Positions 13,715-50,956 of a stretch of DNA of 64,000 nt are shown here, piece after piece. Position 1 is the first letter of the stretch. Every line of letters begins with the position of its first letter. The notes under the pieces are model-generated. The model did no database searches and was not told the origin of the DNA. It was given only the letters and a program-made list of their open reading frames with translations. The translations under genes and the position numbers were made by a program. The stretch is from Mizuhopecten yessoensis (taxonomy: Eukaryota), in the NCBI RefSeq assembly GCF_002113885.1, contig NW_018407435.1, forward strand, positions 1,320,958 through 1,384,957, written 5' to 3'.

Positions 13715-14377
13715 ATGGAGCCCTTGACAGAGGAAAGTGTGGAACATTTCCTCATGAACCATGAGGACTTTTTGGCAAGGTTTTATGAAAAGCATGGTTC
13801 AAAAGAAATGATTGAAAGAATGACTGGGAGAAAGACATTAAAAGTGGAAAATATCAGTATTGTGAAATCTGAGACCTTTATGGAGGATGTCCCCACCCCT
13901 AAAAGAAGATCTGTGACTGGAACGGCTGCAGGTAAACCCATGGGCGGCTATCAGTCATCTCAGAGGAACTCCGTCACGACCAGCATGTTCAAACAGTATG
14001 TGGAAGGACAAATGAAGCAAATGAAGAAAGCTTCGTTGGTTCAAAACATCCTCAGTTTGCGTAAACTAAATGAGCAGGAGTTATTCATGGAGCTCATTAG
14101 GGATATAGCAACGGAACTTGATGTGAATGTGTTGTGTCATAAAATATTACAGAATGTTAGTATATTGACTAAAAGTGACCGTGGCAGTCTGTTCCTGGTG
14201 CGAGGGAATGACCACAGGAAGTTTCTTGTGTCCAAACTGTTTGATGTCACCAGAACGTCCACTCCAGAAGAGTCCATTCACACAGAAGACAATGAGATAA
14301 AAGTGCCATTTGGGAGGGGGATAGCAGGTCATGTTGCTGAAACGAAAGAAACCGTCAATATTGAGGAGGCCTATGAT
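13715..14377 (+). CDS. PDE coding exon 1 (N-terminus and first half of GAF-A)
   Basis: Acceptor ttttcag at 13677; in-frame TGA at 13682 upstream; Kozak-like gccATGG at 13715; MEPLTEES...NIEEAYD; donor GTAAGA at 14378, phase 0. Confidence 0.93.
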
Positions 14378-29300: not shown

Positions 29301-32300
29301 ACGCTACCTTAGGCTGCCTAGAATATGTTGCCTGAATGTCTTACAAGGGCAGCTTCTTAAGACTTCTTAAAATATGATTTGAAACATTTAATTTAATGAA
29401 AATATTGATTAATAGTATCTTAATAGAAACCCCGAGGGTTGGAGATTAATAGAATCTTTCACCCCCTTGGGGGTGAGATAGGAGAATCTCAACCCGAGGG
29501 GAAGATTTTTAAGTTGCCAAACACGAGGCTTTGCTGAGTGTTTGGCAACTTAAGAATCGTTTCCCGAGGGTGGAGATTCCCCTATCTCCCCCACAAGGGG
29601 GTGAATGATTCTGTTTCTCTTACCCTGTTCTCCCATTGTGTATCATATTGATATACACAATGTAACGATAACGTTACATTGTAAATTCAGGGTTGACGTG
29701 ACGTTGGCGGATTGTTGACGTGACGTCATTGTATTGTTGAAGTGACGTCATGCCATTGTATGAATAGGGGAATCCCCCCGTCTCAACCCTAGGGTGAGAC
29801 AAGGAAATCTCACACCGGTAAAAGTGCGGATACACCTGTTCAGGGTAAGAGAATACTCTGTCACACCCTCAAGGTAGCAGATGAGTGTAAACAAAAACAC
29901 ATGAATATTGTCATTCTCTTTTGATTACGTCACAATTACCAGTGACGCATTTTAATGACGTCACAATTGAACACGTGCTAATCGGCACAAGGTTATCTCC
30001 CTGTAGGGGGTGACAAGCTGTTCTTTCTCGGCTAAAAGGGGAGACACACCCGTGAAGGGTGGGAGACACATCCGTGAAGGGTGGGAGACACACTCGTGAA
30101 GGGGGGGGGGGGGGACAAACCCGTGAAGGGGGGGAGACACACCCGTGAAGGGTGGGAGACACCCCCGTGAGGGGGGGGAGACACACCCGTGAAGGGTGGG
30201 AGACACACCCGTGAAGGGGGGAGACACACCCATGAAGGGGGGGAGACACACCCGTGAAGGGTGGGAGACACACCTGTGAGGGGTGGGAGAAATATTTTTC
30301 TTTTAAATTTTCATCTGAGGATGCATTGAAGTGTAGAATTAAGCATGTATGCTTCAAAATGTTCTCAGCACTTTCTGTTGGCTTCAAGGATAACGTCACA
30401 GCTATTAACCATCTTTCGAAAATATTTGTCATCAATATTAGAATTTAAATACTCAGCCTGTATCCAATAATAGAAATCTTATGACCTTGGCACAGCTTAT
30501 AATCTGTGGAGATAAAATTTCAAAGTTTATCCAAGTACAGTGAGATTATCCCTGAGTCACACTTTATTGCTCTCCATGTTTTAACTTATATAACTTCAAT
30601 ATATTCTCATTGTTTTTATGAACTAGGCTATGAAACTAAATGCAATAGGTAATATTGTGTTATGCATGTAATGAAGGCAAGTGGGATACACTGTCAACAT
30701 ACTTTTGTGCTAATTTGGAGGTGGTAAAATATTTCAATTGCTAAACATAAAATCCCTGTTTCCTGCGCATGTCACAAAGTATTTGATTGCTGTAGGGTAA
30801 CTCATGATGTTTGTGACTTGGAAATTGCTGCTAATGTGCAGAAATTTACACTTCATCTCTTTTGTTTTCTTATTTCTTATAGTGTTGCCAGTTTAGCAAA
30901 ATCAAAAAATGCTGAGATTGCTCGCCATGTGGTGGTGCAGGGAATGCCTCTCAACATTGTTGATCTGGAGGAGGATACAACGTTTAAAGGCCCGGTAAAA
31001 TTTGGTTTGTTATGACAGGCTTCAAAGTGATATGTTTGATTTGTAGTAAAGCCTCACAGTATTTGATGTCTGCGGGAATGTCAGAACCAATGTGAAATAT
31101 AAGGATTTACATGTAATTTATAAAATCCCTGTTGTGAGTTTTCTATACTTTACTTTTGAAAACAAAACAAGTCTATTTTTGTACCCTTATGGTAAATTCA
31201 AACTTCTGCTAATCAATGCAAAAATCAATATGAAGGTGAAAAGTTTGAAGACTTTATCACAAATAGGCAGACTTTGCAAGTATGCTTTCTGTTTGAATTA
31301 AACGTGAAAGCCACAATACATCTGGTAGTTGTTGTGTGGTTCCTACTCACAAAATCATCTCAATTAAAAACTACTCCTACTTGCGTCATTGACGGTATTG
31401 CAGAACCATGTCAGAATTTAGGCCAAACAAAAAAATATTTTGTGTTTCCGGTAACCCTACCTACCCTAATTTCTTGTGCCTACCCTACACTTTTTATTAA
31501 GGCAATTTTTAAAGAAGCACTGTTAAAGTCAAGATCACTCTTCGATATAAACCATATACAATTATTTGTTAATTTTTTTTTTTTTACCTACCTACATACC
31601 CTAAATTTTTCCAACATGTTGCAGGAAACACATATTTTTTTGTCTGGCCTTAATTAACCATGCAATTTTAAATCCAATGGTATTGAGTGCAAAACAGTGT
31701 TAAAACAGTGTAGATATTTAAATGTCAATAGCTTCTGTTAATCCATTACACACGATTCCATTTCATTTGACTGTAGCATGTTGACGAGGATGGGTTCCAG
31801 AGTAAGAGCATGCTGTGTATGCCTATCTACAACAGTGACAAGAAAATCATTGGGGTGACACAGCTGATCAATAAAATCAATGGCCAGGCCTTCATTGAAA
31901 GTGATGCCAACATCATCGAGGTAGGAGACCGACCAAATTATAGCTACAAAACACGGTTGTGTATCTTACAAGACCAATTTAAATATATATGAAAATGAAA
32001 TCTGAATTGATGGTATACACTTATAAGTTTAAATCGATATGACAAAACTAGGTAATACAGTTGAATCTGTATTAAGTGGCAGCCTAAAGGAAAATTCAAA
32101 ACCAGCCTTTGATAAGAATTGACTATTAACAAATTCTTTTTAACAGAATTACCAGACACATGTGACCTACCAAATGACCCCTTGTTCATATAACTGTTAC
32201 CATAAACTGACCATCAACCCAAGCGCACATTCACACATGTATTTAAAGAAAGTTTGAAACAAAAAGATTCAGTGGATCAATTAAACTATGATATGACAGT

Positions 32301-35300
32301 AAACAAATGTCATTTCACTCATAACAATAAATCACCGGAGACTTGCTGAAGTGCTTGAATTACACAGCCATCTTTTTCATCAGCATTCAGGATTTAAGTT
32401 GAATTATAATGTAAAACATTGTCATCGAAATAAAAGTGACTTTCCTCCACTTGCTGGTTGCATCAGATCTACATTCTCATATACAGTTAAATAACAGTTT
32501 CAGAAGGGAGGAAAATGGTTGCATAAAAGTCACCTAATACAGATGGTCTCATGATTAGATTTATTTATAGTTTTTACAATCTTTTTAAAACATGTTGCTG
32601 TTGTCGACATTCCTTCGCAAAAATTCTGTAAGAAATGTCTTCTTTTTTATGTTTAGGCATTCTCTATCTTCACTGGCCTGGGGATCCACAATTGTCAGAT
32701 GTATGAGAATGCTTGTAAGCTGATGGCAAAACAGAGTGTGGCGCTGGAAATCCTGTCCTATCATGCCACGGCTCAGGCTTCGGATATAGACGAGTTGTTG
32801 GTAAGTAGAAGCTAGTGCCCAATGCTATCCCAATCCCATTTTGTGATTTAGGAGAAAGTTTTTAAGCTTTGGACTGTTATTGAAAGTATTATAAGTATGA
32901 ACAAAATAAACCCCACAGATATTTAGCTCACTTGGCACAAAGTATGAACGGTCAGGCACATGACGGGGCCCTCGCTGACCTCACCTATCATTGGTCTAGT
33001 TTCATTTTGATATAACTGTAGTTGAGTCACGACACTCAATCCATTGACCAGGTAGCTCAGTGGGTTAGAGCGATATTACAACAATCGGAAGATTTTCACA
33101 CTCAGAACACTTTGATGATTGTATTTTGTTCATTTCATCTTTATTATTTTTTCATAAAAGTCGTGCAAGGTACGGTTTTCTTTTCAGAAATGACTTATCA
33201 AAGCTATAATCTTGTCAGAAATGACTTATCAAAGCTATAGTCTTTCTTGACAGGAGTGACTTATCAAAGCTATAGTCTTTCTTGTCAGAAATGTCACTTA
33301 TCAAAGCTATAGTCTTTCTTGTCAGAAATGTCACTTATCAAAGCTATAGTCTTTCTTGTCAGAAATGTCACTTATCAAAGCTATAGTCTTTCTTGTCAGA
33401 AATGTCACTTATCAAAGCTATAGTCTTTCTTGTCAGAAATGTCACTTATCAAAGCTATAGTCTTTCTTGTCAGAAATGTCACTTATCAAAGCTATAGTCT
33501 TTCTTGTCAGCAATGACTTATCAAAGCTATAGTCTTTCTTGTCAGAAATGACTTATTAAAGCTATAGTCTTTCTTGACAGAAATGACTTATCAAAGCTAT
33601 ATAGTCTTTCTTGTCAGAAATGACTTATCAAAGCTATAGTCTTTCTTGTCAGAAAAAAACACTTTCCAATGGATAGTTACAGAGTACATAGATTTCAGCA
33701 GCGTAACAGGGGTCCTCAATTTATTGTATTCATATAAAGAACAAGCCCATTATGCAGTTTGGCTGTGAATTGTTATTGAAAAGCCTTCTGATAAAATTCC
33801 ACTGCATGGTGTCTAATACATGATTGAAAATACAATACAAATTGAATTATACCAAACTAGGTAGAAATCAATACAAGATTTGATTTGAAAGTGGTTGTTT
33901 TCTTATTTTAACAAGCATTTTCTATATTTTGTATTTTTTGTTTTCTCATTATCAGACCTGTGAAATCCCATCTGCAGCCAAGATCGAGTTGTACTCCTTT
34001 GGCTTCAATGATATACCCATGCCTGATCTTGATACAGTTAAGGCTGTGGTGTGTATGTTCAAGGAAGCCGACCTTTTCACCAAGTTTCGGATACCTTATG
34101 ATGTAAGTAAATGTTCTTGTAAACGTGGACCTAACTTGGTTAAGCTATATATAGATTACTACCTGCATCATCATGGGTACAGCTAAGATCTGTGATAGTT
34201 ATAACGTTGCGATCATCAGGTCTTTTTGAGTTGTTTATTCATATAGGCAATCGATACATCACTGATCGATGCACATGTAGTCAAGAAGAATACAAGGTAT
34301 AAAATGATTGCCAATACAACTATCAAAAGAAACTAACCTTTTCTGGAAATATTTCATTCATTACCAGGTGCTGTGTCGATGGGCGTTCAGTGTTAAGAAA
34401 AACTACAGGCCAGTGACGTACCACAATTGGAGACATGCATTCAATGTTGCTCAGACCATGTTCACCATGATATTCGTGAGTTGAAAATTCAACACAATTA
34501 TCTATGTCGGATTTTCATCATAGGAGGAGAAGTAGTTACATGTAGTTCTACTTTTGTTGCAATCATGTTTGAAGTTTTAAATGAGAAGTGATTTTGATTG
34601 GCTGTTACTCAGACAATAGTATTGAACTGGACGAATTACAATCTTCATAAACGAGCTATAGAGTAATTGTAATAAAGATATAATTCTAATTGGATTGTAA
34701 TTGACCTGAATTAGTAAATATGAATGAAAAAATCACCTGGATGACTCGAGATCTAATAACTCTCAGTGTCATCTTCATTGTCTTCATTAATGAGTATCAA
34801 TGGCTGCCATGTGGGTAACAAGATGTCATTGAAATATCATGAAATGGCAGATACACTTGGTGTCTAGTGGTACTTACATATATATAACAGCTGCACATGA
34901 AACTTACATAGACTTGTTATTTTTATTCCTACAGACTGGAGGATTAAGGCATATGTTTTCAGACATAGAAATATTGACGTTACTGGTCGGCTGTCTGTGT
35001 CATGATTTGGACCACAGAGGAACTAACAACGCTTTCCAAGTCAAGTACATGTCCATCCATTGCATATCTAAGTTTCTTGATTAGTTTTAAACATATTTTG
35101 ATAATAAACTGAGAGTTTCATTTTGATACTCCCATCTATGATGGGACATGTATTATGGTATGACATAATATTGTCTTGCTGGCTGGGTGTCAACAAATAT
35201 TTCATCAGGGTCATAACTTCCTTGCTAATCTACCTATACATAACCAAACTTATTTTACTTGTGTATCTTGGGGATAGGTTGTGAGCCCTATACTGAAATT

Positions 35301-38300
35301 TAGTCATGTGCCTCATTATAATTGTACCCAGTTATAGCCTTTTGTTCATTTTTTGACACCAAAGTTTGTCAACAGTATCACTTTTGGGAAGGGTATCCCA
35401 TGTTACAATTATGGTTTTTTAAGTTCACCTGGCCCAAAGTTGTCCGTCGTCTGTCCAGCATCAACGCTTTTCTTTAAACAACTTCTCATATCTGGCCAAT
35501 GTAGCATGTTGGGATTTAGGGCTACAAAGTATGACTTTGACCCACTTTCAATATCACAGGGGTCAGATGTTTAAAAAGCTTCAAAGCAATTTCTTCTATA
35601 TAACCCAAAGGTCTAGGATGATGATATCTGGCCAGAAGCATGCTGGGATGAATTGTTCAAATGAATTACCTTTAATAACCGACTTTCAAAGTCCCAGGGG
35701 TCAAATAAAACTCCAAACAACTTATTCACAATAACCAAAAGGCCCAGGGTGATTATATTGGCCTGTAGCTTAATTTAGCCTATTTAATTATATTCATCCT
35801 TGGTCCACTTTTGAGGTTACTGGTATGAAACTAAATACCATTGAGGATCGGCCAAGCCATTGGGCCGCTTGTTCTTGTTACAGTTCGGTAGTTTGATCAA
35901 TTTTATTACAAAAATGCATTAGCAGAAAGGTTATTCGTATGGCCTTTAGGTTGATGTATTATGCAATTTGAATTCAGGACTTTAAATCGATTTATTTTAT
36001 TTTGCTTTCTCAGGGTTGTCTCCCCTTTGGCTATGCTGTATAGTACCTCGGTGATGGAACATCACCACTTTGACCACTGCATTATGATACTCAACAGTGA
36101 GGTAGGTTAAAATAATTAACAAAGAATCACATAGTCTCAAACCAATGATGAGAAAATTGCATTTGAATTACCATACTGAAGCTGTTTTATCAACACCTAT
36201 GTTCATTATTTGCTTGATTAAAATTGATCTTTCTTTTCAGAGTTTAATATTCACTGTAGTGTATATCTGCATATTTGAGTTGATATTTGAATTGAGACTC
36301 AGAGTCTGTAAATACATGTAGGTGTCCTTTTAATTAGCATCATATAGATTTAATAACTGGATTTTGAAGTTAGAATTTTCTCCACCGTTATAGAATAATC
36401 TGACAATGTTTTTTCTTCTTTTTTTTAGGGCAACAACATCTTTCAGTCCTTGTCATCAGCGGAATACAGAACTGTAATCAAGATGTTGGAGCATGCGATC
36501 CTCTCCACAGATCTCGCTTTGTACTTCAAGTAGGTGTTAGCAGAGTTTTAAGACTTGAAAGATCTAGTGTTTCTGAATGTTAAGCATTTGCAGATAATTT
36601 TATTAAAAATTAAAGTTGTATCATAATGTTTTGTGAATAAAGAGGATTTAAATCCTCCAGTGGTGACTAATATCAATAGAATTTATCATAAGTTAGGATC
36701 TGGGAGCTGGAAATGTTGCCAGAGGATGGAGAATTAAAGGTCAGAAGGAAGGTTTTGCTCACATTCTGACCCCAAATTCTACATGACGATTTTCATAATT
36801 ATCCCCCTTTACTACATACTGGTAATGAGTGAATCTTTGTCTCCAATCTATGACTCCGAAATTCTGTAAAATAACAACAATGACATTGGGAATGAGACAA
36901 TAAATATAGTAGATTTTCAAGATAAAGTACAAATTAACCATGAACATTTTGTGTAGAAAATGAGGTGACAAAATATTGTGATGTCATGCTGTGCTAGGTA
37001 ACTATCAAAAACAGTCATTCATAATCTAGAGGTAATGAAATATATAGCAGGTTTATGATGAATACCTGGAGATATGTATCTGGCCATGGATGAATGTTAA
37101 CATGGAATTCAATAGGTAAGTGAATATCCTAGATCTGAATAGTTGCTGAAAGAGGAACTTGTTTCCTTTGATAGCTGTAATGTGTTGTAAATAACTGTTA
37201 TTTGTATATATTTACAGGAAGAGGGGAGACTTCAAGGCTTTGATAGACAAGGGAGACACGAAATTTGAAACAGATCATAATAAGGAACTGTTGAGGTAAA
37301 GTAATCACATTATAATCTGCACAAGTATAGGGCAAACTTTAAAAATAAAATAAATAATTTCAAGTGAATTCCATAAAATTGATTAATGATAGAATGAAAA
37401 GATGAATCCAGATTTTAGAACATTAAACAAAATTATTGTAGACATTGCTTTATCTTAAATCAGTACCAATAGTATTAGAAGGATTTAGAATAATGTAAGT
37501 TAAAAATGATTTCTTTTCTATGTGTTCTATTTAATGGCATATCAATGGAAGTCATGCTTTTTTTTATATATTTATATGCTTATTTTTTTACGATTGTGGT
37601 TAAAATACAGAGCCATGATGATGACCGCATGTGACGTGGCAGCTATCACAAAACCGTGGGAAATCCAGAAGGAAGTGGCACAGCTTGTGGCAAATGAATT
37701 CTTTGAACAGGGGGACATTGAGAAAGACAGACTGGGTGAAAAACCAATTGTATGTTTAAATTTCATATCAATCTTTATCATCGTGTGCTGTACATACTCA
37801 GATTAGTGCATTGATGTTTCAGTACATCAACCTCAGTTTTCACACCTAGATATATATGGGAGATCAATGAATACACTGTAAAAGCTCTAGGCCTTAGGCT
37901 TTATGTATGAGAAACATATGCAAGACCACACACTTGTGTTTTTCTAACAATCAAAAAGCACGAGTTTATTGCGCGGACGAATATCCGCACACGAGTGAAT
38001 ATATACGTCCGCGCAATAAATGAGTGCTTTCTGATTCGTCAGTAAAACACAAGTGTGTGGTCTTGCTTTTATCACATACCTTCCGTATTTGGTAGAGATC
38101 GATACAAAGATTTTATAAACTTTTATATTTTTTGCAAAAACCTGGAACTTTTCAGTTCGCCATGACAAGGGGATGATTCCCATAAAAAGTAGTTCCGACT
38201 AGTAGGTAAATACAACATTCCGTATTGCACATGTGCAATACAGAACGTTGTATTTCATGGTCTGAAATTTGCTTGTATTTCTATAACAAGATTCAACAGG

Positions 38301-41300
38301 TATGTGATAAACTGGATTATGAAATAAAATGCTGTTTTAAATTATCAAAGTTATACACGTCGGGATTTAGTGCTAGAACTTACAAAAACCTTAACGTATA
38401 CAGGCATTTTATATTAGCAGCTATCATTATGTTAGAGCTCTTTAAAATAAGCTCAGGAAGCACGAACATATCGTGACCACTGGAAATAAGTATACTTACT
38501 ACAGAATGATATACATACCTGTATGATGTTTCAAATTCCAGTATAATTTAGATATTTAAAAGCACACCCTTTAATTAAGGTTGTCTTTTCATGGTCTCTT
38601 ATCCGTGTTGATGATTTATGCATTGCGCAGATGGAACTGATTTTTCATTGTCTTTTGTTTTGTTCACAATTTGTAGGTATACTCAGTTTAAATCTTGTTA
38701 TATTTGCCAGGCTATAATGGACAGAGAGAGTTTAAATCTTGTTATATTTGCCAGGCTATGATGGACAGAGAGAGTTTAAATCTTGTTATATTTGCCAGGC
38801 TTTGATGGACAGAGATAGTTTAAATCTTGTGATATTTGGCAGACTATGATGGACAGAGAGAGTTTAAATCTTGTTATATTTGCCTGGCTATGATGGATAG
38901 AGAGAGTTTAAATCTTGTTATATTTGCCAGGCTATAATGGACAGAGAGAGTTTAAATCTTGTTATATTTGCCAGGCTATAATGGACAGAGAGAGTTTAAA
39001 TCTTGTTATATTTGCCAGGCTTTGATGGACAGAGATAGTTTAAATCTTGTGATATTTGGCAGACTATGATGGACAGAGAGAGTTTAAATCTTGTTATATT
39101 TGCCAGCCTATGATGGACAGAGAGAGTTTAAATCTTGTTAAATTTGCCTGGCTATGATGGACAGAGATAGTTTAAATCTTGTTATATTTGCCAGACTATG
39201 ATGGACAGAGAGAGTTTAAATCTTGTATATTTGCCTGGCTATGATGGATAGAGAGAGTTTATATCTTGTTATATTTGCCAGGCTATGATGGACAGAGAGA
39301 GTTTAATTCTGGTTATATTTGCCAGGCTATGATGGACAGAGAGAGTTTAAATCTTGTTATATTTGCCTGGCTATGATGGATAGAGAGAGTTTAAATCTTG
39401 TTATATTTGCCAGGCTATGATGGACAGAGAGAGTTTAATTCTGGTTATATTTGCCAGGCTATGATGGACAGAGAGAGTTTAAATCTTGTTATATTTGCCA
39501 GACTATGATGGACAGAGATAGTTTAAATCTTGTTATATTTGCCTGGCTATAATGGATAGAGAGAGTTTAAATCTTGTTATATTTGCCAGGCTATGATGGA
39601 CAGAGAGAAGAAGGATGAGTTGCCGAAAATGCAAGTTGGCTTCATTGATGCCATCTGTATTCCTGTTTACAAAGTATGTACAATTGTTTATAACTTTATT
39701 GATATTTTTATACTTCAGAACATGATAATTGTGTTATACTTTGCACTCTAGATTTCAGTTTAACTTTTTCACCATTTCACAGATAAACCAAATGATCCAA
39801 AAAAATATGTTAAGCACTATTTTTTTAACTCACCTGTTCATCAACTAATTAACCAAACTTGTATTAACATGATATAAAACTCAACGTTGTTAAACTAAAC
39901 CTTTTTAGCAGGACCAATTAAGGAGCTAACAGTCAGTACCTAAATTTCTATAAGGGATCAGAGACTGGAAAATCATATTGTGTGTATTTGAAGTTGTTTG
40001 AATCAGGGATAACAGACAGAATGACTTTAAGGGCCATATTAATGTCTAGATGTTAAAAATATATGTGTAATTGGCATTTTTTATTAGAACAATATCTTTC
40101 AAAAACCCAGTTTTAATATTGTGGTAATAACGTTTGTTCTGTATAAGATGTACAAAGCATAATAAATCTAATGTACCAAAATTTCTTGCAAGCTACACCA
40201 TGTAACCAGACATTGCATGAAACTGTAGAAAGAAAAATTTGAAAAGCTTAAGAATTTTTGTTATCATGAATGATTTATTAATTCAAAAATTTGAAGTATT
40301 AAACTGACATTACATGCTGTAGGAAAATGATTTTACCTATAGATATCTTCCAAAATATCACTGGAGTTTGAAAAATAAAAGAGAGAAGTGTTTTTTTCAT
40401 GATGATCACATTTTGTAGGTTTAAATCAATTTTCAGCTTTCCATTACATATACACTTTCAAATGAAATTAAATTCTAGCTTAATTGGTGGTATACATGTT
40501 TTACATCAACTGTAGTTTGTTAAATGATAAGGCCATATGCAGAAAAATTAAATGAGTCGCAACTACTTACAGTATGTGAGATAGTATGTAGATATAATAA
40601 AGCCTTTTAACTAATCATGTGTTTGGTATATGGTTAAGATGTTTTCAGAGTTGTGGGGTGGTTTACGGCCCATGTACAAAGGATGTGTATACAATCGGAA
40701 TCAGTGGCAGGATTTGGCTGACAAGCAGAATGCACTAGAATCACCTTCTAAAGTCACCTCCACAGGTCTCCTTGTCAATATATCTTTATATTATTTTCTC
40801 TCCGCCTCTTCATCTTGTCCTAGCTTGATTACCACTGCAGAATCCTGCATGTTGGCTGTTCATTGGATGGTGCTTTCTTAACCTTAGTTTATCCTGAATA
40901 TTGCCTGAAATGTCTTACCAGCTTACTTTTGGAATTCCTGAAGAGGTTTAATTTCCATACACATGTATTTATGTTGTGGTGTAAATGTGGGAACTAATTG
41001 AATTCTTGCATGCAAATTGAATAGAACTTGCATATGGACCTGAGAGTGCTCCCTACTCTGATATTGTAATAAATATTTACCCTGTATACAAGACTTAAAA
41101 TATCCCTGCATGTACATGTATAGATAAAGTTAGAGAAATTCTATCCAAGGGGTTTAATGCTAAATTCTCATGGAACAAAATATTCACCTCGAAGCAAACA
41201 ATAATGCCCAAAACAGTTGAGAATATCAGTGAAAATTATAGAAACATGTACATTCCATTACTATTCTGCAACACCATATATCATCTGATTGTAAAATGTT

Positions 41301-44300
41301 ACGCGATGTCATTCTTTGTCTTTTATGTTGACTTGACAGTACAGTTTGCCTATTTAATTATAGTTATGAGTCAATCAAATGTAGAATTTGAGGATATGGA
41401 AATTACACCTATATCCCTCCTGTATGAAACTTCGAGGTGGTTTTAGTCTGAAGATTAGAAACTAGGGAAATTCTGCCTGTTAATCAGAATTTACAGGCGG
41501 GGTGGATCGAGGCAGAGTTTGAAATTGAACAAAGCTCCATCTGAATTATGTCTGTGAATTGATACAGAACATTGTTATTTTCTTCCTTCAGTTCAGAGGT
41601 GTAAGTTTCTACTCCAGTTGTTGCCAAACTACAGATTACCAAATGTGGTCTTTTAGGATACATGTTTTCTACCTTTTTATGAGTGCTCGGTTAAATACAT
41701 GGGACCTTGTATATGTGTATCTTTTATGTAGAGGTGAGAGAAATGCTTCTTGCGTGAGACATCTCTATCTTACATGCATGATAAATTGGATAAATATCAT
41801 CTGAAGAATGTTTCACAGAGTCATCAGTACACAGCTACATAATAGTGAATTCCATGCTAAAGTCCTCATTGTTGTTAATCAGTGTATGTACCCTAACAAC
41901 AAACACCATGCCTGTGTGTTTCCCTATAGTAAACCCTGGAATCAGTATCCGGCACCCACACCCAATAGACCAGTTTAACATTTTGCTTTCAGTTTTCCAC
42001 AGTATGCCCAAGTACCGGTATATAACATGACAATTCCTGGACTTTTAACCTACCTAACAAGTATTTCATTTCTTGAGCATTCTTTGCTTGTTGGCCATGT
42101 CATATTTAGATTATAACCTCTGGTTTTGGTAGTCTTAACAACGGTCCATTGACTAAAGGAAACAAGAGTATTTCAAAAAATTTTCATATTAACCCATAAA
42201 TCCTTCCACCAATGTTCCTTGTTAATTCCTTAATCAGAAAATATTTGAAATATTTGCACAAGTTTAATATTTTACCGTATATGCCGTAATGGGCACCCCT
42301 CCTTCAATAAGTGTTCTTCCCTATATCTGTTTCCAGTGACAGGAGCATAAGAACATATGGTTGCATTATTTGGCTTTTGAACTTTTCAGCTTTTTTTTTT
42401 AGCAAACTTGGTGAAAGGGTGGCATTTTAACTCTACAAACTACTAGTAGTATTATTACGGAAATGTTGGTGTTGGCAATGCTGCTTCAATATATTCTCCA
42501 CCACGTGTCAATATTTCTGCATACATGTATATATTTATAATTTGTGACGATTAAAATAAGAAAAATAAAAGTACTGAAAATTTCCACTTTTATGATACAG
42601 ACGATTTCTTCTGATTAACCAAGAGATCCAGGCTGATAATATTTGGCCAGTAGCATGCTGGGATAAAGGGCTACCAAGTTTGTTCAAATGAATGACCTTC
42701 ATCCATTTTCAAGGTTACAGGGATCAAATATGTTAAAATCTTTTAACGACTTAAGAGGCCTAGGTTGATGATATTTGGCACGTTACATGCTGGGATGATT
42801 AAGGGCTACCAAGTTTTGAAGGGCTACCAAGTTTTGAGGCTACCAAGTTTGTCCAAATGAATGACCTTGACTTATATTCAAGTTTAAACCTTTAAACAGT
42901 TTCTTTTGAATAACCAGGAGGCCTAGGTAGCAGAGTACAGTAGAAATGGCTTGATCCTAAAAATAAAGGGCATGTCTCATATAAACATGGAAAGCGGATT
43001 TATCCTGCACAACACACCTACATATATATATATATTATAAACTACATTTTGAATACAAATATTTTAGAAGAATGATTTCTTTTTCAAAAAGTGATTTTCC
43101 CAGATTTGGGACTTGTGAAAACCATGGTTACCACATCAAAAACTGCCAAAAAATGCTAAAATACATGATTTTTAACCAAAAATTTGACCCATGCAAATAG
43201 TATTTTTTGTCTAAACCTGTTTGAAATTGAATATCACCTACTCTGTAACAGAAATACTCACGTTTTAGCATAGGTCGTTCAACTGGATTTTTCACAATAT
43301 TTACACATGTGCTGAGTACAAAAATAGACTACCGTACATGAAAAGCTAGCTTTTGTTGTGTAGACACAGATTTGTAAATGGCCAAAAATGTAGTCTCAAA
43401 CCAAATTTTTTTTTTTTAAATGTGAAGCCCACATAGTCCTTCCTCTTCATCATGTATATGCCATGTAATATTACATTGGTTATTCATTATACAAAAATAT
43501 CACCCATGGCCACCATACGCTACTCTACACTGCTACCCTAGGACGATGGTATTTGGGCAGTAATTACATGCTGGGATAAAGGACTACCAAGTTTATTCAA
43601 ATGAATGACCTTTACCTATATTCAAGGTCACAGGGGATATATGTTTACAACCTTTTAACAACTTCTTCTGAATAACCAAGATGCCTAGGATCGTTGAAAT
43701 TTTGCCAATGAACATGGTGGGATGAATGGCTACCATGTTTGTTCAATTTAATGACCTTGAATTTAATTCAAAGTCACAGGGGTCGAATATGTTGAAAACT
43801 GTGAAAGACTGCTTCTTCATAACCAAAAGGACCATGGTGATGATATTTGGCCAGTAACAAGCTGGGATAAAGGGTTACCAAGATCAAATGAATAACCTTC
43901 ACCTATTTGCAAGGTCACAGGGGTCAAAAATGTTGAAATCTATAGACCAATTCTGAATAATCTAAAGGTCCAGGGTAATGATATTTGGCCAGAATCATGC
44001 TGGTATGAAAGACTTAAAAGAAAGGCTGTTCAACTTAATGTCCTTGTTTGACTTTCAAGGTCACATGTGTCTCACGTTTAAATCTTTTAATAGATTCTTT
44101 TGAATCAAAAAATGATATTTTGCCTGTAGTATTTTAGTCCACTTTTACGATTACAAGTGTAAGATTAATACCAGGTGAGCAATACAGGCCCATTGGGCCT
44201 CTTGTATTTTTACCTAGTATTAAAAACATTTTAAAAGTATACAATGTTCTGAAAAAACGAGTGGGAAATTTTGATCGGTGATTGTGGTGTCTGCTCTTTG

Positions 44301-47300
44301 TTAACACAATATATTATTTCCAAGTTCAAACTGCAGAGCTATAACATTTGATTCCCAAGGCATGTCCAGGCATGTGGTACAGATCCTATGTCAGCCTCTA
44401 TAAATATGTCTATAAATATAGTTTCTTCATTTTCACTGCTTGCTGACTATAATTTACTTGCAATCGGAAAAAGATTTGTGATTGGTGATGGTATAATTGT
44501 GAAATTCATTTCTTCATTGATATAATTTTTTAATTAATATAGGAGTATGCCTTTTATTTTACCAAAAACAGTGAGCATGTTTTTTTCCCCAGCATCATGC
44601 ATATGATTGATAAATTTTATAGAACGAAGTCATTTAATCAGAAAAAAATATTGATTACTGTCTCAAACTTATTATTCTAATGTTGTACTGAGTAAGCTTG
44701 CATGTTGTTTGGAACATGTATGTATACAATGTAGTGTACATGTCTCATTTTAAATGATACAGCTGATGGGGTCATGTTATATTTTTTTTTAAATCAAGAT
44801 ATGTAAAAGATCTTGGGTACATGGTTCTCATATCTAGCCATCTCTTAATAGGTGTATGCGTTACATTTCAAAGTAATTGTTCTTTTCTCCTTATTATTTT
44901 GTAAAATATATCAAGATAAGAAGGCATTATCAACATCAAAGTTGTCTTTTCTTGAAAATATCATTAGCAAGTTTCATAAAAAAAGATTAACAAATTCTGT
45001 TTCGGCTAAACAATCAAAATGCAAAATAAAGCAACTTGGCCAATTATAATGTAGAAAAACAGAAGCTAAGTAACATAATCAAATGAAAACAGACACTAGT
45101 ATAGTTTAACCCTTTCACCCCTATGTAACTTTAGTAGACTCTGCCATGCATTGATCCAGATGAGTCTATTTTGGTCTACAGTGGTTAAAGGCCTATGGAA
45201 AATTTATATAAATTTGAAATTAAGATACATGTACTAATAAAAGTATGGTATCATTTAAGGTTTGAAACGCATGTGTTTTTAACATTTATGATGGTATACA
45301 GCACAGCTATGCACATCTTGGAAAATAGGGTTGAATTGAAATGTGTTGCATACCATCTTCAGTGTCAAAAAGATGCATTGCAATCCTTATATTTACTTTT
45401 CAAGACGATATTATTCCATCGATCTCATTCAGTTCAAAATATATTTTAAACCAAACTGTTTCACCGAACACTTTTTCCGTCAGTTGGTGAACATCAAATA
45501 AAACCATTCAGGAATGTCAGTCATAATATAAATGTGACATCACATCATGATTGGTCCGTAATTACTCAGACAGTTTGATTAAAAAGGCCAAAAACTGTTT
45601 CCGATTGGAAAATAATCACACGTAAAAGTTCTTGCTGTTTAATTGGGTTATAACAACGTTTTTTATATGGTATATGTCTATCAAAGGACTTTTCCTGGCA
45701 GAGTGCAATGGTGCAATCGACTTTCGGACAGATATTTCATTCTATTGTAGCACTCTGCAACTCTAAGAAGAATTGCCTTTTGTAAAAATTAGGAAAACAT
45801 TAAGGTATAATCAAGGATTTGTTCTTGAAAACAAGTCCTTCTGGTTTAATAAGTATTGTGATGGCAATAAAGTGATAATATGTAATTAAGCTTAAGGTAA
45901 GACCTACAGAGGTTTTGTGACATTGTCATTGAATGTTTTCATCCCATTTAGATATTGTTTGTGACTGTGTTATACTCCTTCCAGATGTTCGCCGAGATGA
46001 ATGGAAAACTGGATCCTCTGTACAAAGGTGTAATGAATAATAGGGACAAATGGCAGAAAATGGCTGATGAATATGAACGTAAGATGGCAAGCAGTGGAAA
46101 GCAGGCAAATCATGGTTAGAGATCAGTTTCTGTATTTGAATTCACATATGGCTGCTATATTTTATAGGCTAGATAAAAATGGAAATCTACCTAGGCTGAT
46201 TTTGCTTTTTGTTTTTACGTATAATCTCGCTTTCTAATATATTACGCTTTTAACAGTTCTGAATCTTTAAAAGATACTGGTGTGCTGTTTTATTTAAGAA
46301 AATTTGCCAGGAAGCTCAGGTGGATTTCCATACATGTGAATTGATAAGAAATGGATTTCTCTCAGATTATACCTTTGTACTGGAAGCTCCGATGAAATTT
46401 CCAACAGCAAAACTGGAATTTGATTGGAAGTGCCAGTATTACTAACCTGATTCTAGTTTGCATGTTAAATTATTACTAACATCTTGTTGTATTGTTTACT
46501 GTTGTTTGTAATGTTTTCAGTTTCGATGTTAATCCTTGTTGTCAGAGTGTTGTATATGTTGTCCATAGTGTGCAGCACAGTGCACCTTCAAAGAGGTGTA
46601 AAAACTGTTTTGCAAAATAATTAATATTTGGCTGTCTGCATGAACTTAATCGTTTTTAAACTGGTGCTTCCTTCACATTTCTGATATGGCTTATTATATT
46701 ATGATAAAATTATCAAAGCTATGTTATGAATGTTAAAAAAGGAAATTAAATAGAGAATAATACATGCCTTTTTCCATATCACACCCTTGGTCGAGGGTTG
46801 ATACTGGGTGTGATATGGAAAAAGGCGTGTTTTATTCTGTTTATTACATACTTACTAATAAAAACTACTAACTTATGATTTATTTTCATTTTTGAAATAT
46901 TGAAAAATGTTTTTTTTTTTCAAATGGGGTGTGATATGGCTTTTGCGGGCTGATATGGGTTTTGGGGTGTGATACGTCGGGGGCTGATACGGGTTTTGGG
47001 GTGTGATACGGCGAGGGCTGATATGGGTTAGAGCAATTGTGTCGTATCGCATATACAAAAAACCTGTATTTATTCGTAAGTATGAAATAAATGTTATTAA
47101 TATCCAGTGTAGTAGATAATGGCAATGATATTTGATGAATAATCAACAACATGTTACATGTCTGTGTATTATGATTGAATGAATGAAAAGGTGAGAAAAT
47201 GTTAGAAAAATATAAGTAATGAAGGCCACTTTGGCCTGAGTTAATATCCAACACTTTTAAATCTCAGGTTTTATATTCCTTCATAATATAATAAAAAATA

Positions 47301-50300
47301 TTTCTAATAATAATTTAAGTTATCACAATGAAGACTTAATTTAAACCTGTGTTAGTGATAAATTACAAGATTTTAGCATTTGAGTCATTTCCCTTAGTCT
47401 GGTAGACTTTCGACTATAGAGTTATCTACTTAAGTGCCTATAAGACAATGTGACCTAAATCATTCATAAATTAGCTCCAAAAACTGTACAACTAGAGGGG
47501 ACTTGGGTTTGCACAGTAGCATTAGTCGATGTGTGTGTCACTTTGTCTGGGGTATATATCTTATACACTCTTTCACCTACAAATGCTAAATTTTATTTTG
47601 TATCACTTGGGATGATCGATTGAAATGGGTCTTGTGCCTGTTAACAGCCTTTTGTTCATGTGTCACTTTGTCTGGGGCATACATCTTGTATAGTATATAT
47701 GTTACCTACAATGGCCGAATTGTATTTGAATACCTCTTGGGAGTATCATGTACAGAAGTGGATCTCATGCCCAAGTATATACAGAGTTATAGCCCTTTTT
47801 TCATTTTTTTATTCTGAAATTCACGACAAGGTGGGAGGAGGGATTGCTTGCAATACTTTGCTTTGTTTAAACTATGCTGTTCTATTGCCTGTACAACCAT
47901 TTGCCACATGATGCCTCCTTTTGATTTCACCATCAAGGCATTCACAGCTGATGTCATAGTTTCTGGATGCTGCAGTCAATGGTCCTGTCCTGCCAGTTAA
48001 ACATGGATGTATGTGGAATCATTAGATATGCACATGCACGCATGTTAATTCCCTCAATAAAGCTAATATGTCAAAAACAATCCACACCCGGCTAAAATGG
48101 AGGCTTTAGAAGAGAGTTGCACATGTTTTTTGTTTGTTAGGAAATGATGCATGCACACGCATACATTGTTATCCAATGATACATGGAAACTAAACAATTG
48201 AAAGTGTCATTTAACAATTTTTACATTGCAGACATAGAATAATATTGAAAGTAGTGTAACATACGATATTGCAAAGTAGGAATTTCATTGGTGTGATCAC
48301 GAAGGCATTTCAAAATTATCGGCAGAAAAGATTCTGCCAAAATCAAACTTCAGGAACAGCAGGAAGCTAGTGATCAATTAAAATAATGATTTAAATTCTA
48401 TCTTTTGGTACTGGTAATGGAAGTGATACAAAGCTGAATTTGTATACAATCACCATAAAGCCTTCAGTACAATTGCAAGATTGACCCCCTCCCACCTACC
48501 TCCCCCATATTTATTTATTATGAATTTTTCATATTATTCCAAACAAGGAATTGGCCAGGAGTGCATCACGTGTCCACCGATAAAAACCGATAATGACTTG
48601 GAGCGCGTGATTTTTGTTCAAGGACTGGGTGTTTCTAAAAATAGAATTATGACGTGTCTCCAAACAATGCACTGTCCCGCTGCCGAAGTTGTTTTGCTGT
48701 GGGTTTTTTTGTCGTGTTTTTTTTTGTCAGATTGCTTACATCACTGTTTTGAAAATAATGAAATAATAGTAGCATTTGGCTGAAGTCAATGCCTGGATTT
48801 ATTCACCAGAGCAAGGATATATTGACCGAGGATTGCTATAATTGAATATTGCAGACTCTTCCAAATTTGTTTTAGTTGTTGATGAAACTTGCAAGAAAAT
48901 AACCATATCCTTTATCAGGAGAAGACAATTGATAATCAAAGTCTATACTGCATATCTTGTCTGTCAAACTAGTCGTTTTAAGGAAAAATGTCTAAAACAT
49001 TTGTCTTCTTCTCTTCGAAAGAGCTTTGACAGACTTGGTGTGATACTTTGTTTCACCATCAACTTGTTGTAATGGATGTGTCAACAGTTATCAGTTACAC
49101 ATGTACTAAAACTGTGTAGGTTAGATTAAGAGGATGTGGTGTATTACACACAATTTATGTTTTGAAGTTTAGTTTGTACTTAGTATAAGTTGCTAAATGT
49201 TTTTACTTTCTTTTCCTACTAACATAAAACAGTGATATTTTTGTAATCACCTGGTTAGAGGGACTGTATGGTTAAAAACTTTCATAGAACTATGAGATGA
49301 TTGTAATGGCAAGATAAATCGATAACAACCCTATTTGGCGCCATTCTTAGGTGGTAAGGATTCAGAATTGTACAAATGAAGGAGTTGACTGCTAAATTGA
49401 CTATGTGACTGTGATTCTTAAACTTATGAGATAGTTACCAACAATATTTGGTTGGGGAAGGAGGCTGAGGGGGGCATGGCTAAAAATGTTAATTAGGATA
49501 GACCTTAATTGGGGTCTGCCCCTGGCAGTAGGAACTTGGACGCTAAGCCAAGCATGGAAACAATGAAAAGAAATATACAATTGCTAAGCATGGAGATCTT
49601 GATACATATTTTCTACTAGGATTGGCCCTTGGGTCTGGCCCCATCCCTTGGATTTTAATATCAATGTTTCTTTGAATGAGATTATTTTGGTAGGATTTCT
49701 TTAACATACAGGTGAGCAATACAGACCCTCTAGGCCTTTTTGTTATATGTACACTAATAACCAATGTCTCAATAGCATACAGACCCTCTAGGCCTTTTTG
49801 TTATATGTACACTAATAACCAACATATCAATAACATACAGACCCTCTAGGCCTTTTTGTTTAATTTACACTAACAACCAATATCTCAATATCCTACTGAC
49901 CCTTCATTTACCTTGTATTATATATAATTACGTGAAACATTAACATATTAACACATGTTTGTTGGTATTGCTGACTTGTTTATTCTGTTTTGAAAGAAGT
50001 TTTTATTACATGTTTTGGCCCAAAATGATGTGGTTGATGGGCTATAAAACAAAACAGATAGTTATATCTTATATTTGCTATTTAGCCAGTGTATCTTAAC
50101 AAATTACAAAATGTCTAGAGTTTTTTGAAAAAAATAGCTTTCTTTATGCAGAAATCTTTATTCTATACAGAAAATCATGGGGAAAAGAATGTAATTATGG
50201 AAAAATTTTGATATGATGATGAAATCATTATGATAACAAATATCATAATAACTATAGTTAATATAGTAATTCCCTGTCAATGATGAACATGTGAATAATG

Positions 50301-50956
50301 TAAATGAACGTGGTACCCGGGTGTTGTAGATGAACAAGGACATACTTTTAATTCTCAATGCTCTTTCCCAATGTTAGATACAGATGAACAACCTGCACCA
50401 GCCAACAACTCAAGTCAGGAACAAAAAACACAAAATGGAGGAGTACGCAAGAACAGTACAAACAATACCCAGCAAAAGAAGGTTAGTTTCTTCATAAAAT
50501 ACCTCAAAACATGAGGAAAAGAAAGTATGTATGTGCATATGGTAAACTTCTTTCACATCAGAAATGTTTTCATTGTTCTGTTAAAATTAAATTATACAAA
50601 TTTGCACAAAACACAAAACCTAAAGTATCTTTTGTTGCAAAACAAAAAACAAAGGAAGGTGGACTTCCACTGGTAGCCAATTATGATGTCTCCTAACTAG
50701 AGCAGGACTGATCTTTAAACAAATGTTACAAATATTAAATTTGGTTTAGTCTTTTCTGTCATTTTTTGTACAATTAAATATTACTTTAGCCATTAAGATT
50801 GATGTCATCTTTTGTAACTGTTTGAATGAAAAAAAATATGTGCTATGTATCATGAACTTATTTTGTATTCCTCGATTCCAGTATGGGTCAAATGTGATAT
50901 CAAACAAGACTGACTCGAAAAGCTCTAAAAAGACCAAGATCTGTTCCCTGATGTGA
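13715..50956 (+). CDS. Pde6: Spliced gene: GAF-domain cGMP-type 3',5'-cyclic nucleotide phosphodiesterase (PDE5/6/11 clade, invertebrate PDE5/6-like) with C-terminal CaaX
   Basis: About 20 GT-AG exons join in frame. They encode two GAF domains (SILCMPI...GVAQIINK...F...DE; SMLCMPI...GVTQLINK...F...D), a PDEase catalytic domain ([59 protein letters not shown]) and terminal CSLM*. The symbol refers to the Drosophila-type PDE5/6 orthogroup and needs a phylogeny to confirm. Confidence 0.93.
15216..15374 (+). CDS. PDE exon 2 (GAF-A)
   Basis: cag|[24 protein letters not shown]...FTKQDEE|gtaatt, 159 nt, phase 0-0. Confidence 0.95.
15695..15932. mobile_element. PIF/Harbinger-type MITE (family H1)
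   Basis: TTA flanks; inverted copy of 31421-31649. Confidence 0.78.
17903..18094. mobile_element. Palindromic MITE of about 190 bp (family P, copy 1)
   Basis: About 65-bp arms TTATTC.GTCTTTGCGTA..GCAGAGTTATCTTCTCTTGTGAGCAGGTA..GATTGTTACGTC. Confidence 0.9.
18251..18340 (+). CDS. PDE exon 3 (end of GAF-A)
   Basis: tgcag|[30 protein letters not shown]|gtaatg, 90 nt; not in the ORF track. Confidence 0.93.
18413..19542 (+). mobile_element. Helentron/DINE-like non-autonomous element with internal ~150-bp tandem units
   Basis: 5' TTATACCCCCGC with short hairpin and (GTCT/GTCC)n; repeated GAGTTATGGCCCTTTGTTGAA units; 3' GCAGGGGTAT subterminal inverted repeat and CAGTTCTAGTTT end. Confidence 0.8.
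20347..20487 (+). CDS. PDE exon 4 (start of GAF-B)
   Basis: tttaag|[23 protein letters not shown]...[15 protein letters not shown]|gtagga, 141 nt; AAG acceptor. Confidence 0.92.
21256..21690. mobile_element. TIR element, Kolobok-like (TTAA-type flanks)
   Basis: TAAGGTAAAGGGTACC ... GGTACGCTTTACCTTAA. Confidence 0.65.
22051..22128 (+). CDS. Candidate cassette exon 5 (GAF-B loop insert)
   Basis: T-rich tract and tag|[26 protein letters not shown]|gtaaac, 78 nt, phase 0-0, no stop. No recognisable family homology. Confidence 0.5.
24879..25362 (+). mobile_element. tRNA-derived SINE (family C)
   Basis: TGGTCGAGTGG A box, GGTTCGATCCC B box, CA-rich segment, 3' GGCGCTATATCAAATG..TATT tail. Confidence 0.82.
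26933..26980 (+). CDS. PDE exon 6 (48-nt GAF-B loop exon)
   Basis: tttttctcatag|[16 protein letters not shown]|gtaatt, phase 0-0. Confidence 0.72.
29128..29192 (+). CDS. PDE exon 7 (GAF-B)
   Basis: tttgcag|[21 protein letters not shown]+AG|gtgact; phase 0-2 matches the next exon. Confidence 0.88.
29451..29612. repeat. Long inverted repeat (about 75-bp arms), part of a larger repeat element
   Basis: AGAATC..TCACCCCCTTG..AAGTTGCCAAACAC / GTGTTTGGCAACTT..CAAGGGGGTGAA..GATTCT. Confidence 0.88.
30038..30290. repeat. About 22-bp G-rich minisatellite, about 11 copies
   Basis: Unit GGGAGACACACCCGTGAAGGG(T/G). Confidence 0.93.
30883..30994 (+). CDS. PDE exon 8 (GAF-B)
   Basis: Long pyrimidine tract, tag|(S)[37 protein letters not shown]|gtaaaa, phase 2-0. 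Confidence 0.9.
31421..31649. mobile_element. PIF/Harbinger-type MITE (family H1)
   Basis: TTA|GGCCAAACAAAAAAATA...TATTTTTTTGTCTGGCC|TTA. Confidence 0.85.
31777..31920 (+). CDS. PDE exon 9 (GAF-B)
   Basis: tag|[48 protein letters not shown]|gtagga, 144 nt. Confidence 0.95.
32657..32800 (+). CDS. PDE exon 10 (GAF-B end and linker helix)
   Basis: tttag|[48 protein letters not shown]|gtaagt, 144 nt. Confidence 0.95.
33181..33655. repeat. 36-38-bp minisatellite, about 13 copies, in intron 10
   Basis: Unit TCTTGTCAGAAATG(TC)ACTTATCAAAGCTATAGTCTT. Confidence 0.95.
33956..34102 (+). CDS. PDE exon 11 (start of catalytic domain)
   Basis: atcag|[19 protein letters not shown]...FRIPYD|gtaagt, 147 nt. 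Confidence 0.94.
34368..34475 (+). CDS. PDE exon 12 (YHNWRH motif)
   Basis: ccag|[36 protein letters not shown]|gtgagt, 108 nt. Confidence 0.96.
34935..35044 (+). CDS. PDE exon 13 (HDLDH metal-binding motif)
   Basis: acag|[36 protein letters not shown]+AA|gtacat, phase 0-2. Confidence 0.95.
35416..35875 (+). mobile_element. Helentron-like non-autonomous element
   Basis: TTTTAAGTTCACCTG head, GTCCGTCGTCTGTCC, internal units shared with 42600-44205, 3' GCCATTGGGCCGCTTGTT. Confidence 0.7.
36014..36101 (+). CDS. PDE exon 14
   Basis: ctcag|(K)[29 protein letters not shown]|gtaggt, phase 2-0. Confidence 0.95.
36429..36529 (+). CDS. PDE exon 15
   Basis: tttag|[33 protein letters not shown]+AA|gtaggt, phase 0-2. 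Confidence 0.95.
37218..37295 (+). CDS. PDE exon 16
   Basis: tacag|(K)[25 protein letters not shown]+AG|gtaaag, phase 2-2. Confidence 0.93.
37611..37749 (+). CDS. PDE exon 17
   Basis: tacag|(R)[46 protein letters not shown]|gtatgt, phase 2-0. Confidence 0.96.
37904..38079. repeat. Long inverted repeat
   Basis: GCAAGACCACACACTTGTGTTTT..TTTATTGCGCGGACG / CGTCCGCGCAATAAA..AAAACACAAGTGTGTGGTCTTGC. Confidence 0.88.
38685..39607 (+). repeat. 44-bp tandem array, 21 copies, derived from the intron 17/exon 18 junction
   Basis: Unit AGTTTAAATCTTGTTATATTTGCCAG-GCTATGATGGACAGAGAG; 923 bp = 21 x 44 minus one deletion. Confidence 0.97.
39590..39673 (+). CDS. PDE exon 18 (invariant substrate-binding Gln)
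   Basis: gccag|[28 protein letters not shown]|gtatgt, 84 nt; begins inside the last copy of the 44-bp array. Confidence 0.94.
40639..40765 (+). CDS. PDE alternative exon 19A (last catalytic helix, variant A)
   Basis: ctaat branch-like motif, taag|[42 protein letters not shown]+G|gtctcc (weak donor, phase 1). Read-through would stop at 40881. Confidence 0.7.
42600..44206 (+). mobile_element. Helentron-like element with ~160-bp tandem units, interrupted by a nested MITE
   Basis: Repeated ATATTTGGCCAGTAGCATGCTGGGAT..GGGCTACCAAGTTTGTTCAAATGAATGACCTT; 3' end CAGGTGAGCAATACAGGCCCATTGGGCCTCTTGT. Confidence 0.82.
42926..43537. mobile_element. Nested TIR element with 3-bp TSD (PIF/Harbinger-like)
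   Basis: CTA|GGTAGCAGAGTACAGTAG ... CTACTCTACACTGCTACC|CTA. Confidence 0.8.
45985..46114 (+). CDS. PDE alternative exon 19B (last catalytic helix, variant B)
   Basis: ctccttccag|[43 protein letters not shown]+G|gttaga, phase 0-1; a second phase-1 donor GTAAGA lies at 46079. Confidence 0.85.
46747..47030. repeat. Inverted repeat plus short GGGCTGATA/GGGGTGTGATA tandem units
   Basis: GCCTTTTTCCATATCACACCC / GGGTGTGATATGGAAAAAGGC hairpin at 46747-46845; repeats at 46926-47028. Confidence 0.8.
49240..49900 (+). mobile_element. Degenerate Helentron-like element with triplicated 3' end and flank
   Basis: CAGGTGAGCAATACAGACCCTCTAGGCCTTTTTGTT at 49709, then two more ~59-bp copies of ATACAGACCCTCTAGGCCTTTTTGTT..ACACTAA.AACCAA. 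Confidence 0.6.
50378..50481 (+). CDS. PDE exon 20 (low-complexity N/Q-rich tail)
   Basis: tag|ATACAG| tandem acceptors (50377/50383); (D)[34 protein letters not shown]|gttagt, phase 1-0. Confidence 0.78.
50882..50956 (+). CDS. PDE terminal coding exon 21 (polybasic plus CaaX)
   Basis: ttccag|[24 protein letters not shown]; phase 0 matches exon 20. Confidence 0.85.
   Translation, partial: YGSNVISNKTDSKSSKKTKICSLM

Follow-up and report, generated by a model that had tools for sequence, protein, structure and literature searches.

An ancient tandem exon duplication predicted to swap the last catalytic-domain helix of a PDE5/6-type phosphodiesterase in the scallop Mizuhopecten yessoensis

The stretch of Mizuhopecten yessoensis DNA analyzed here (the window) is 64,000 nucleotides (nt) long and was taken from contig NW_018407435.1 (positions 1,320,958 to 1,384,957) of a genome of 988 Mb in 82,659 contigs. 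It carries a phosphodiesterase (PDE) gene in which two related exons, designated 19A and 19B, lie in tandem between exons 18 and 20. The public protein P0199, entered as 'cGMP-specific 3',5'-cyclic phosphodiesterase-like isoform X2 [Mizuhopecten yessoensis]', mapped onto the window exon by exon, with seven exon blocks (including exon 1) matching at 100% and the remaining blocks at 83 to 98% in hits that were left untrimmed at the exon ends; the mapping also gave two weak secondary hits of 61% and 46%. The precomputed Pfam annotation of P0199, comprising PF01590/PF13185 (GAF) and PF00233 (PDEase_I), places two GAF domains ahead of the catalytic domain. Judged by this mapping, the window gene is the GAF-PDE of PDE5/6 type annotated in M. 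yessoensis, and "cGMP-specific" is the database name of its product, denoting a predicted activity. The features of the gene that frame the exon pair are as follows.

13715..50956, + strand: coding span, first ATG to stop, of the GAF-GAF-PDEase gene (PDE5/6 type, with a CaaX end), from the exon-by-exon mapping of P0199.
39590..39673, + strand: exon 18, constitutive, encoding part of helix 15 with the conserved Q-V-G-F-I-D and ending in phase 0 (sequence and P0199 map).
40639..40765, + strand: exon 19A, the proximal copy or "A type", with Trp at residue 6, 127 nt, phase 0 to 1 (sequence; RefSeq P0270 and P0533).
45985..46114, + strand: exon 19B, the distal copy or "B type", 130 nt, phase 0 to 1 (sequence; RefSeq P0272 and P0199).
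50378..50481, + strand: exon 20, entered in phase 1 from 19A or 19B (sequence and P0199 map).
50882..50956, + strand: last coding exon, ending in the CaaX box C-S-L-M and the stop (sequence and P0199 map).

An earlier note on this DNA had proposed that 19A and 19B are homologous duplicated exons of the same phase, and this was borne out. The two translations aligned without a gap over 29 residues, 15 of which were identical and 23 similar (BLASTP, E value of 5e-12), and the exons, of 127 and 130 nt, both run from phase 0 to phase 1. Exon 19A is bounded by the acceptor ...ggttaag/ and the donor CACAG/gtctcc (the slash marks the splice junction), and 19B is bounded by the acceptor ...ccttccag/ and the donor ATCATG/gttaga; position 46119, at which the originally noted span (40639-46119) ended, is a TAG reached on read-through past 19B. 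When compared with solved structures, 19B matched the C-terminal helix of PDE6 chains (E value of 2e-4), and 19A matched that of PDE5 chains weakly (E value of 1.4). No third copy of exon 19 was found in the whole M. yessoensis genome, which holds just 19A and 19B. Between the two copies the proportion of synonymous sites that differ (pS) was 0.99, meaning that these sites are saturated, while the corresponding proportion for nonsynonymous sites (pN) was 0.31, suggesting that the duplication is old and that neither copy has drifted freely.

The lengths of the exons bear directly on how they can be combined. Exon 19B has an internal alternative donor after position 46078, which gives a 94-nt short form found in isoform X2 (P0199), the long form being found in isoform X1 (P0272). 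In a local frame check on joined exons, the combinations 18+19A+20+21, 18+19B+20+21, and 18+19B-short+20+21 all reached ...CSLM-stop. Joining 19A to 19B gave a TAA within 19B, and omission of both shifted the frame, which upheld the frame arithmetic of the earlier note. Since the three lengths of 127, 130, and 94 nt are all 3n+1, inclusion of both copies or of neither shifts the frame, and single inclusion alone reaches the CaaX box.

The internal donor of 19B reads GAA C/GTAAGA (window 46070-46080) and sits within Glu-Arg-Lys codons. The same pair of short and long C-termini is also annotated in Pecten, Ylistrum, oysters, and Mytilus, suggesting that these codons double as a conserved 5' splice site.

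To place the exon in the protein fold, the catalytic domains of 19 A-type proteins were aligned and the M. yessoensis A form (P0270 residues 511-849) was folded with AlphaFold2. The resulting model had a mean predicted local distance difference test score (pLDDT) of 86.9 and resembled the catalytic-domain structures of PDE5 and PDE6, with template modeling (TM) scores of 0.89-0.92 at 44-50% identity. In this model, 19A accounts for the closing five residues of helix 15 and, after a break of a single residue at its Trp, for the final helix, which spans 28 residues and has a pLDDT of 95-98. According to the model, 19A is the end of helix 15 together with the last helix of the catalytic domain, the position to which the earlier note had assigned the exon pair from the letters alone. 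The sharpest difference between the two versions was located at the turn, which reads Trp-Gly-Gly in A and Asn-Gly-Lys in B. Two conserved residues of the substrate pocket, Gln and Phe, lie on helix 15.

Public isoforms were then examined for use of the two exons. In M. yessoensis, X1 (P0272, with the long form of 19B) and X2 (P0199, with the short form) are both B-only. Isoform X3 (P0270) contains 19A, so that an annotated M. yessoensis transcript makes use of the splice sites of 19A. In Pecten maximus, isoform X2 (P0533) includes A without B and runs in frame through the downstream exons to the CaaX box, and X3 and X5 are B-only. The A-type exon replaces the B-type exon in Magallana gigas X2 (P0303), M. 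angulata X2 (P0308), and Crassostrea virginica (P0332), the downstream sequence being identical. Isoform sets that hold both versions were observed in a chiton (P0177 versus P0281), abalones (P0254 versus P0209), and a nemertean (P0403 versus P0184), and also in starfish, sea urchins, a crinoid, a sea cucumber, and two acorn worms. The earlier suggestion that the two exons are probably mutually exclusive is supported by A-only and B-only models in P. maximus, the oysters, and other phyla, but in Mizuhopecten the sole 19A model also contains 19B, and an A-only mRNA in this species is predicted from its sequence.

Some further features of the C-termini were noted in these models. The 19B donor (window 46114-46119) reads G/GTTAG in the scallops, as do the donors of oyster B, both nemertean copies, and crinoid A, and other donors are carried by scallop 19A, oyster A, and crinoid B. 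A transcript left unspliced at G/GTTAG gives Gly and then an immediate stop, and several public isoforms terminate within 1-2 residues of this donor point; such read-through may be a conserved route to a tail-less, non-prenylated enzyme. In the clams Ruditapes (P0256) and Mactra (P0220), the sequence after the A-type exon is a short C-terminus lacking CaaX, and the Ruditapes B-type isoform (P0567) retains the CaaX box; in some lineages the type of helix and the presence of the membrane anchor may go together. Upstream of the pair, the 5' part of exon 18 and its CAG acceptor are repeated many times just ahead of the exon (window 38685-39673). The public isoform X4 (P0271, 795 amino acids) ends in a peptide from one of these repeat copies, so that one annotated model makes use of a decoy acceptor.

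Selection on the two copies was assessed by comparing the orthologous genes of Argopecten irradians (L003) and Ylistrum balloti (L004) with that of Mizuhopecten. Both species have 19A between exon 18 and 19B, with 40 of its 42 residues identical (95%), and the residue identity of 19B among the scallops was 86-88%. Across the three scallops, the constitutive exons (about 780 codons) gave a pS of 0.51-0.56 and a pN of 0.07-0.095, compared with a pS of 0.115-0.245 and a pN of 0.020-0.025 for 19A and a pS of 0.24-0.33 and a pN of 0.009-0.094 for 19B. Between Mizuhopecten and Argopecten, 19A showed 3 synonymous differences where about 14 were expected. A hand count on the alignment gave 6 synonymous and 3 nonsynonymous events in 19A among the scallops, compared with a neutral expectation of ~4 nonsynonymous events per synonymous event (P about 0.004). 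The surrounding intron could not be aligned more than about 35 nt upstream of 19A, a stretch which includes a CTAAT motif, or past a short stretch downstream; the 19A donor G/GT and the first 12 intron bases were conserved.

Because synonymous change is suppressed, the changes that did occur are biased toward synonymous ones, and the surrounding intron is unalignable, these comparisons indicate that 19A is constrained both as protein and as RNA. Both copies are under purifying selection. The old duplication under selection that the earlier note had suspected is supported by the retention of 40 of 42 residues in two scallops and by the occurrence of the pair in other phyla. A lack of conservation in relatives had been named, along with a lack of reads entering 40639, as the sign that 19A is a decayed pseudo-exon, and the exon was instead found to be kept in both Argopecten and Ylistrum.

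The same comparison brought out conserved elements within and downstream of the two exons, which are listed here with the putative branch point of 19A.

40611..40615, + strand: CTAAT, likely branch point for splicing into 19A; it lies 24 nt ahead of the AG and is unchanged in the three scallops (putative role).
40703..40741, + strand: stretch of 19A able to pair with the island core at 42069-42104 (30-bp duplex, -35.9 kcal/mol; top partner in the three scallops).
42059..42105, + strand: conserved intronic island whose core, 42069-42104, is complementary to 19A (91-93% identity among scallops).
46020..46034, + strand: stretch of 19B pairing with 46366-46380 (15 nt, 93% complementary).
46179..46331, + strand: conserved hairpin just 3' of the 19B donor, with arms at 46179-46197 and 46313-46331 (three-scallop comparison).
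46353..46379, + strand: invariant 27-nt intronic block 3' of 19B, complementary to the 19B interior (three-scallop comparison).

The island downstream of 19A stands in intron sequence that is otherwise unalignable among the scallops. The pairing of its core with 19A includes a 13-bp helix, and in each of the three scallops the island had no better partner over the whole interval from exon 18 to 19B than the 19A site (z of -4.0 to -5.5). When the island was shuffled with its dinucleotide content kept, 0 of 40 shuffled versions reached -35.9 kcal/mol anywhere in the interval. The invariant block downstream of 19B likewise paired best with the interior of 19B in the three scallops (z of -4.0 to -4.9); its second-best partner was the homologous 19A site in Mizuhopecten but not in the other two scallops. 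Both arms of the hairpin were conserved in the three scallops, and the only changes were one-sided, of wobble type, and pair keeping. What is new here is that each alternative exon can pair with a conserved downstream intronic element in all three scallops. Whole-exon scans of the oyster, nemertean, and crinoid genes revealed no duplex outlier, and the duplex claim is therefore confined to scallops.

An Rfam scan of 39500-51000 found no family at the conserved islands or the hairpin. Weak microRNA-precursor-like matches were obtained at 44154-44231 (28 bits versus a gathering threshold of 90) and at 46752-46836 (27 versus 86 bits), and these are probably due to chance. Two known routes to exclusivity were also considered. 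Competition between selectors for a docking site was rejected, as each exon pairs with a separate intronic element. The donors read GTATGT, GTCTCC, and GTTAGA, none of them of the ATATCC/GTATCC (U12) type, and the intron between A and B is 5.2 kb long; exclusivity through U2/U12 incompatibility or through steric hindrance was ruled out on these grounds.

The arrangement of the pair was then compared across phyla. The order exon 18, A, B, next exon and the phase of 0 to 1 were found in six of six genomes, namely, the three scallops, an oyster (L005), a nemertean (L006), and a crinoid (L007), in a count that leaves out the starfish, urchin, and two acorn-worm loci, whose gene ranges exceed 100 kb. 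In molluscs, echinoderms, hemichordates, and the nemertean alike, position 6 of the proximal copy is aromatic and position 7 is Pro or Gly. Orthology of the copies was tested with a "cis minus trans" similarity, (A-A + B-B) minus (A-B + B-A), calculated with and without the motif positions. Within Ambulacraria the result was positive in 10/10 comparisons with the motif and in 10/10 without it. Within Lophotrochozoa it was positive in 9/10 with the motif and 5/10 without, and across both superphyla in 23/25 and 14/25, respectively. These data indicate that the pair is older than the divergence of echinoderms from hemichordates and, at the least, than that of scallops from oysters. One origin for all bilaterian pairs is plausible, and in view of the counts the argument for it consists only of the proximal aromatic-Pro/Gly motif, the shared order, and the shared phase.

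Lineages with one version were scored in the same terms. Vertebrate PDE5 and PDE6 both scored B-like, and the idea that the A and B copies were inherited by PDE5 and PDE6, respectively, was rejected for this reason. The single copy of amphioxus scored A-like (9/10 comparisons), and the single copy of insects leaned toward A over the first 29 positions, a lean that faded over 35. In the mussel Mytilus galloprovincialis (L008, 42803-44174), one copy lies between exon 18 and the next exon and is about equally similar to A and B, which looks like a lineage-specific loss.

Taken together, we consider it likely, with a probability of roughly 0.8, that 19A and 19B stem from an ancient tandem exon duplication in an invertebrate PDE5/6-type gene and that both are functional coding exons used as alternatives, so that a helix is swapped, with exclusivity enforced by exon length and with the duplexes as switches. 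Each copy encodes the terminal part of helix 15, the turn, and all of the last catalytic-domain helix, and one gene would give rise to two enzymes differing solely in these parts. Exclusivity of the protein output is enforced by the 3n+1 lengths, single inclusion alone leading to the prenylated CaaX tail. With its strong acceptor, 19B would be the default exon; the polypyrimidine tract and the donor of 19A are both weak, and its inclusion is probably a regulated, minor option. [quoted passage not shown] As masks, they would also explain the suppressed synonymous change. We know of no regulator protein for the choice between 19A and 19B in scallops.

Several points weigh against this interpretation. 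As evidence of splicing, the public isoforms are automatic RefSeq predictions, and X3 (P0270), the sole public 19A model in Mizuhopecten, reads from 19A into 19B out of frame and ends 18 residues later without a CaaX box. A search of short transcript-derived fragments for exons 17-18-19A returned no scallop fragment with 19A, and two Logan-derived full-length scallop proteins were of B type. The case for the duplexes is built on three sequences so alike that there is almost no covariation among them, and the local fold z-score of the hairpin at 46179-46331 was just -1.8, which is weak. That the A and B enzymes differ in function is likewise something we infer.

The structure of X3 raises the question of whether 19A might be an unproductive-splicing exon which, when joined with 19B, brings in an early stop that lowers output or yields a truncated, non-prenylated enzyme, its conservation then reflecting splicing control. 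The sole Mizuhopecten 19A model has exactly this A+B form, the resulting stop sits upstream of two more exon junctions, and the synonymous sites of 19A are unusually conserved, as they are in regulated poison exons. However, 19A has no stop of its own and its frame is kept in all scallops, while its changes there are mostly synonymous (6 versus 3 events), which argues that the peptide itself is constrained. The A copy stands alone and in frame in Pecten maximus X2 and in oyster, chiton, abalone, nemertean, and ambulacrarian models, and the model predicts a helix for the A peptide with high confidence. The frameshifted tail, in contrast, is unconserved, and other scallops would stop after 6 residues. 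We regard this explanation as improbable, although it deserves to be kept in mind. It is very unlikely that 19A serves chiefly as an alternative last exon, with the transcript ending in or retaining the following intron to give a short non-CaaX enzyme. Such ends are seen in oyster models, since P0330 reads from the A exon into the intron and P0298 ends two residues past the A exon; in the window the frame stays open for 37 more codons after 19A, and about 140 nt 3' of 19A align with Ylistrum. This downstream stretch nevertheless contains indels between scallops, so that no frame is kept; the 19A donor G/GT and the first 12 intron bases are conserved, and Pecten X2 splices 19A to the next exon.

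That 19A is a decayed and disused pseudo-exon could be argued from its weak acceptor and donor and from its E value of just 1.4 against solved PDE5 chains when searched alone, but this is refuted by the conservation among scallops and has next to no probability. In 19A, 95% residue identity and suppressed synonymous change are found among species in which half of the synonymous sites of the constitutive exons differ, the flanks and the branch-point motif are conserved, and 19A is used in RefSeq models of two scallops. An ancient duplication with both copies in use as alternative coding exons is the interpretation we retain. It can be extended to a broader scenario in which the A/B pair was already present in the protostome-deuterostome ancestor and was kept for more than half a billion years in a single invertebrate PDE5/6-type gene, with loss in vertebrates (B-like only) and in mussels; exon-masking RNA duplexes would make the choice, and the swap would retune the surface beside the pocket-lining helix 15. 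We put this combination forward as a tentative proposal, rather unlikely to be correct in every part.

Substitutions derived from tandem exon duplication have been catalogued for human genes, and most such events are ancient (PMC8373072, PMC9741552); tandem-duplicated mutually exclusive exons are reviewed in PMC9013439. The scallop pair joins this known kind, being composed of adjacent homologous exons of the same phase and near-equal length, with one predicted per mRNA, a homologous element swapped, old age, and purifying selection. Unlike in the catalogued human cases, the swapped element here is the last helix of a PDE catalytic domain, and phosphodiesterase is unmentioned in the main text of PMC8373072 and PMC9741552. 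Vertebrate PDE5 and PDE6 carry the B-like version only, unlike the A/B pair of invertebrates.

Known PDE isoform diversity consists of alternative promoters and N-termini and of C-terminal tails. The scallop gene resembles this in varying its tail, through the long and short 19B donors and the CaaX and non-CaaX ends, but the A/B swap alters a catalytic-domain element beside helix 15 and not the N-terminus or the tail. The earlier note had not recognized a helix swap within the catalytic domain as described, and in agreement with this, we found no account of alternative or duplicated catalytic-domain exons in PDE5/6/11-type enzymes in the open-access literature, including the PDE6 evolution paper PMC4906994; the isoforms themselves exist as database predictions.

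With regard to the duplexes, competing RNA structures for mutually exclusive exons, in which one docking site is served by several selectors, are known from Dscam and 14-3-3 zeta (PMC6071210). The scallop gene is similar in that conserved complementary elements near the alternative exons could decide exon use. It is dissimilar in that no docking site is common to both exons, each has its own downstream intronic partner, and the paired stretch is exonic. In FGFR2, the choice between IIIb and IIIc is helped by a stem of intronic elements between the two exons. Both genes have a pair of two exons, exclusive in FGFR2 and probably so in the scallop, and a conserved RNA duplex involving the intron between them, but in the scallop gene one arm of the duplex is exonic and the duplex is predicted.

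Three aspects take the pair beyond the routine: its wide phyletic spread, the location of the swap inside a pharmacologically relevant catalytic domain, and the pair of conserved exon-intron duplexes. For annotators it is a warning that two catalytic versions stand behind the "PDE5-like" entries of molluscs and echinoderms. For the study of splicing it offers a compact two-exon system with conserved exon-intron duplexes in which exon choice set by RNA structure could be followed outside insects and vertebrates. PDE5 and PDE6 are major drug targets and the effector of vertebrate vision, and to our knowledge the role of the last catalytic helix and of the turn between helices 15 and 16 has been little explored. 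The invertebrate gene provides a natural two-version form of this element in an otherwise identical enzyme, strongly selected in many phyla. A comparison of recombinant A and B forms would probe what the element contributes, be it to kinetics, inhibitor sensitivity, partner binding, or coupling to the prenylated tail.

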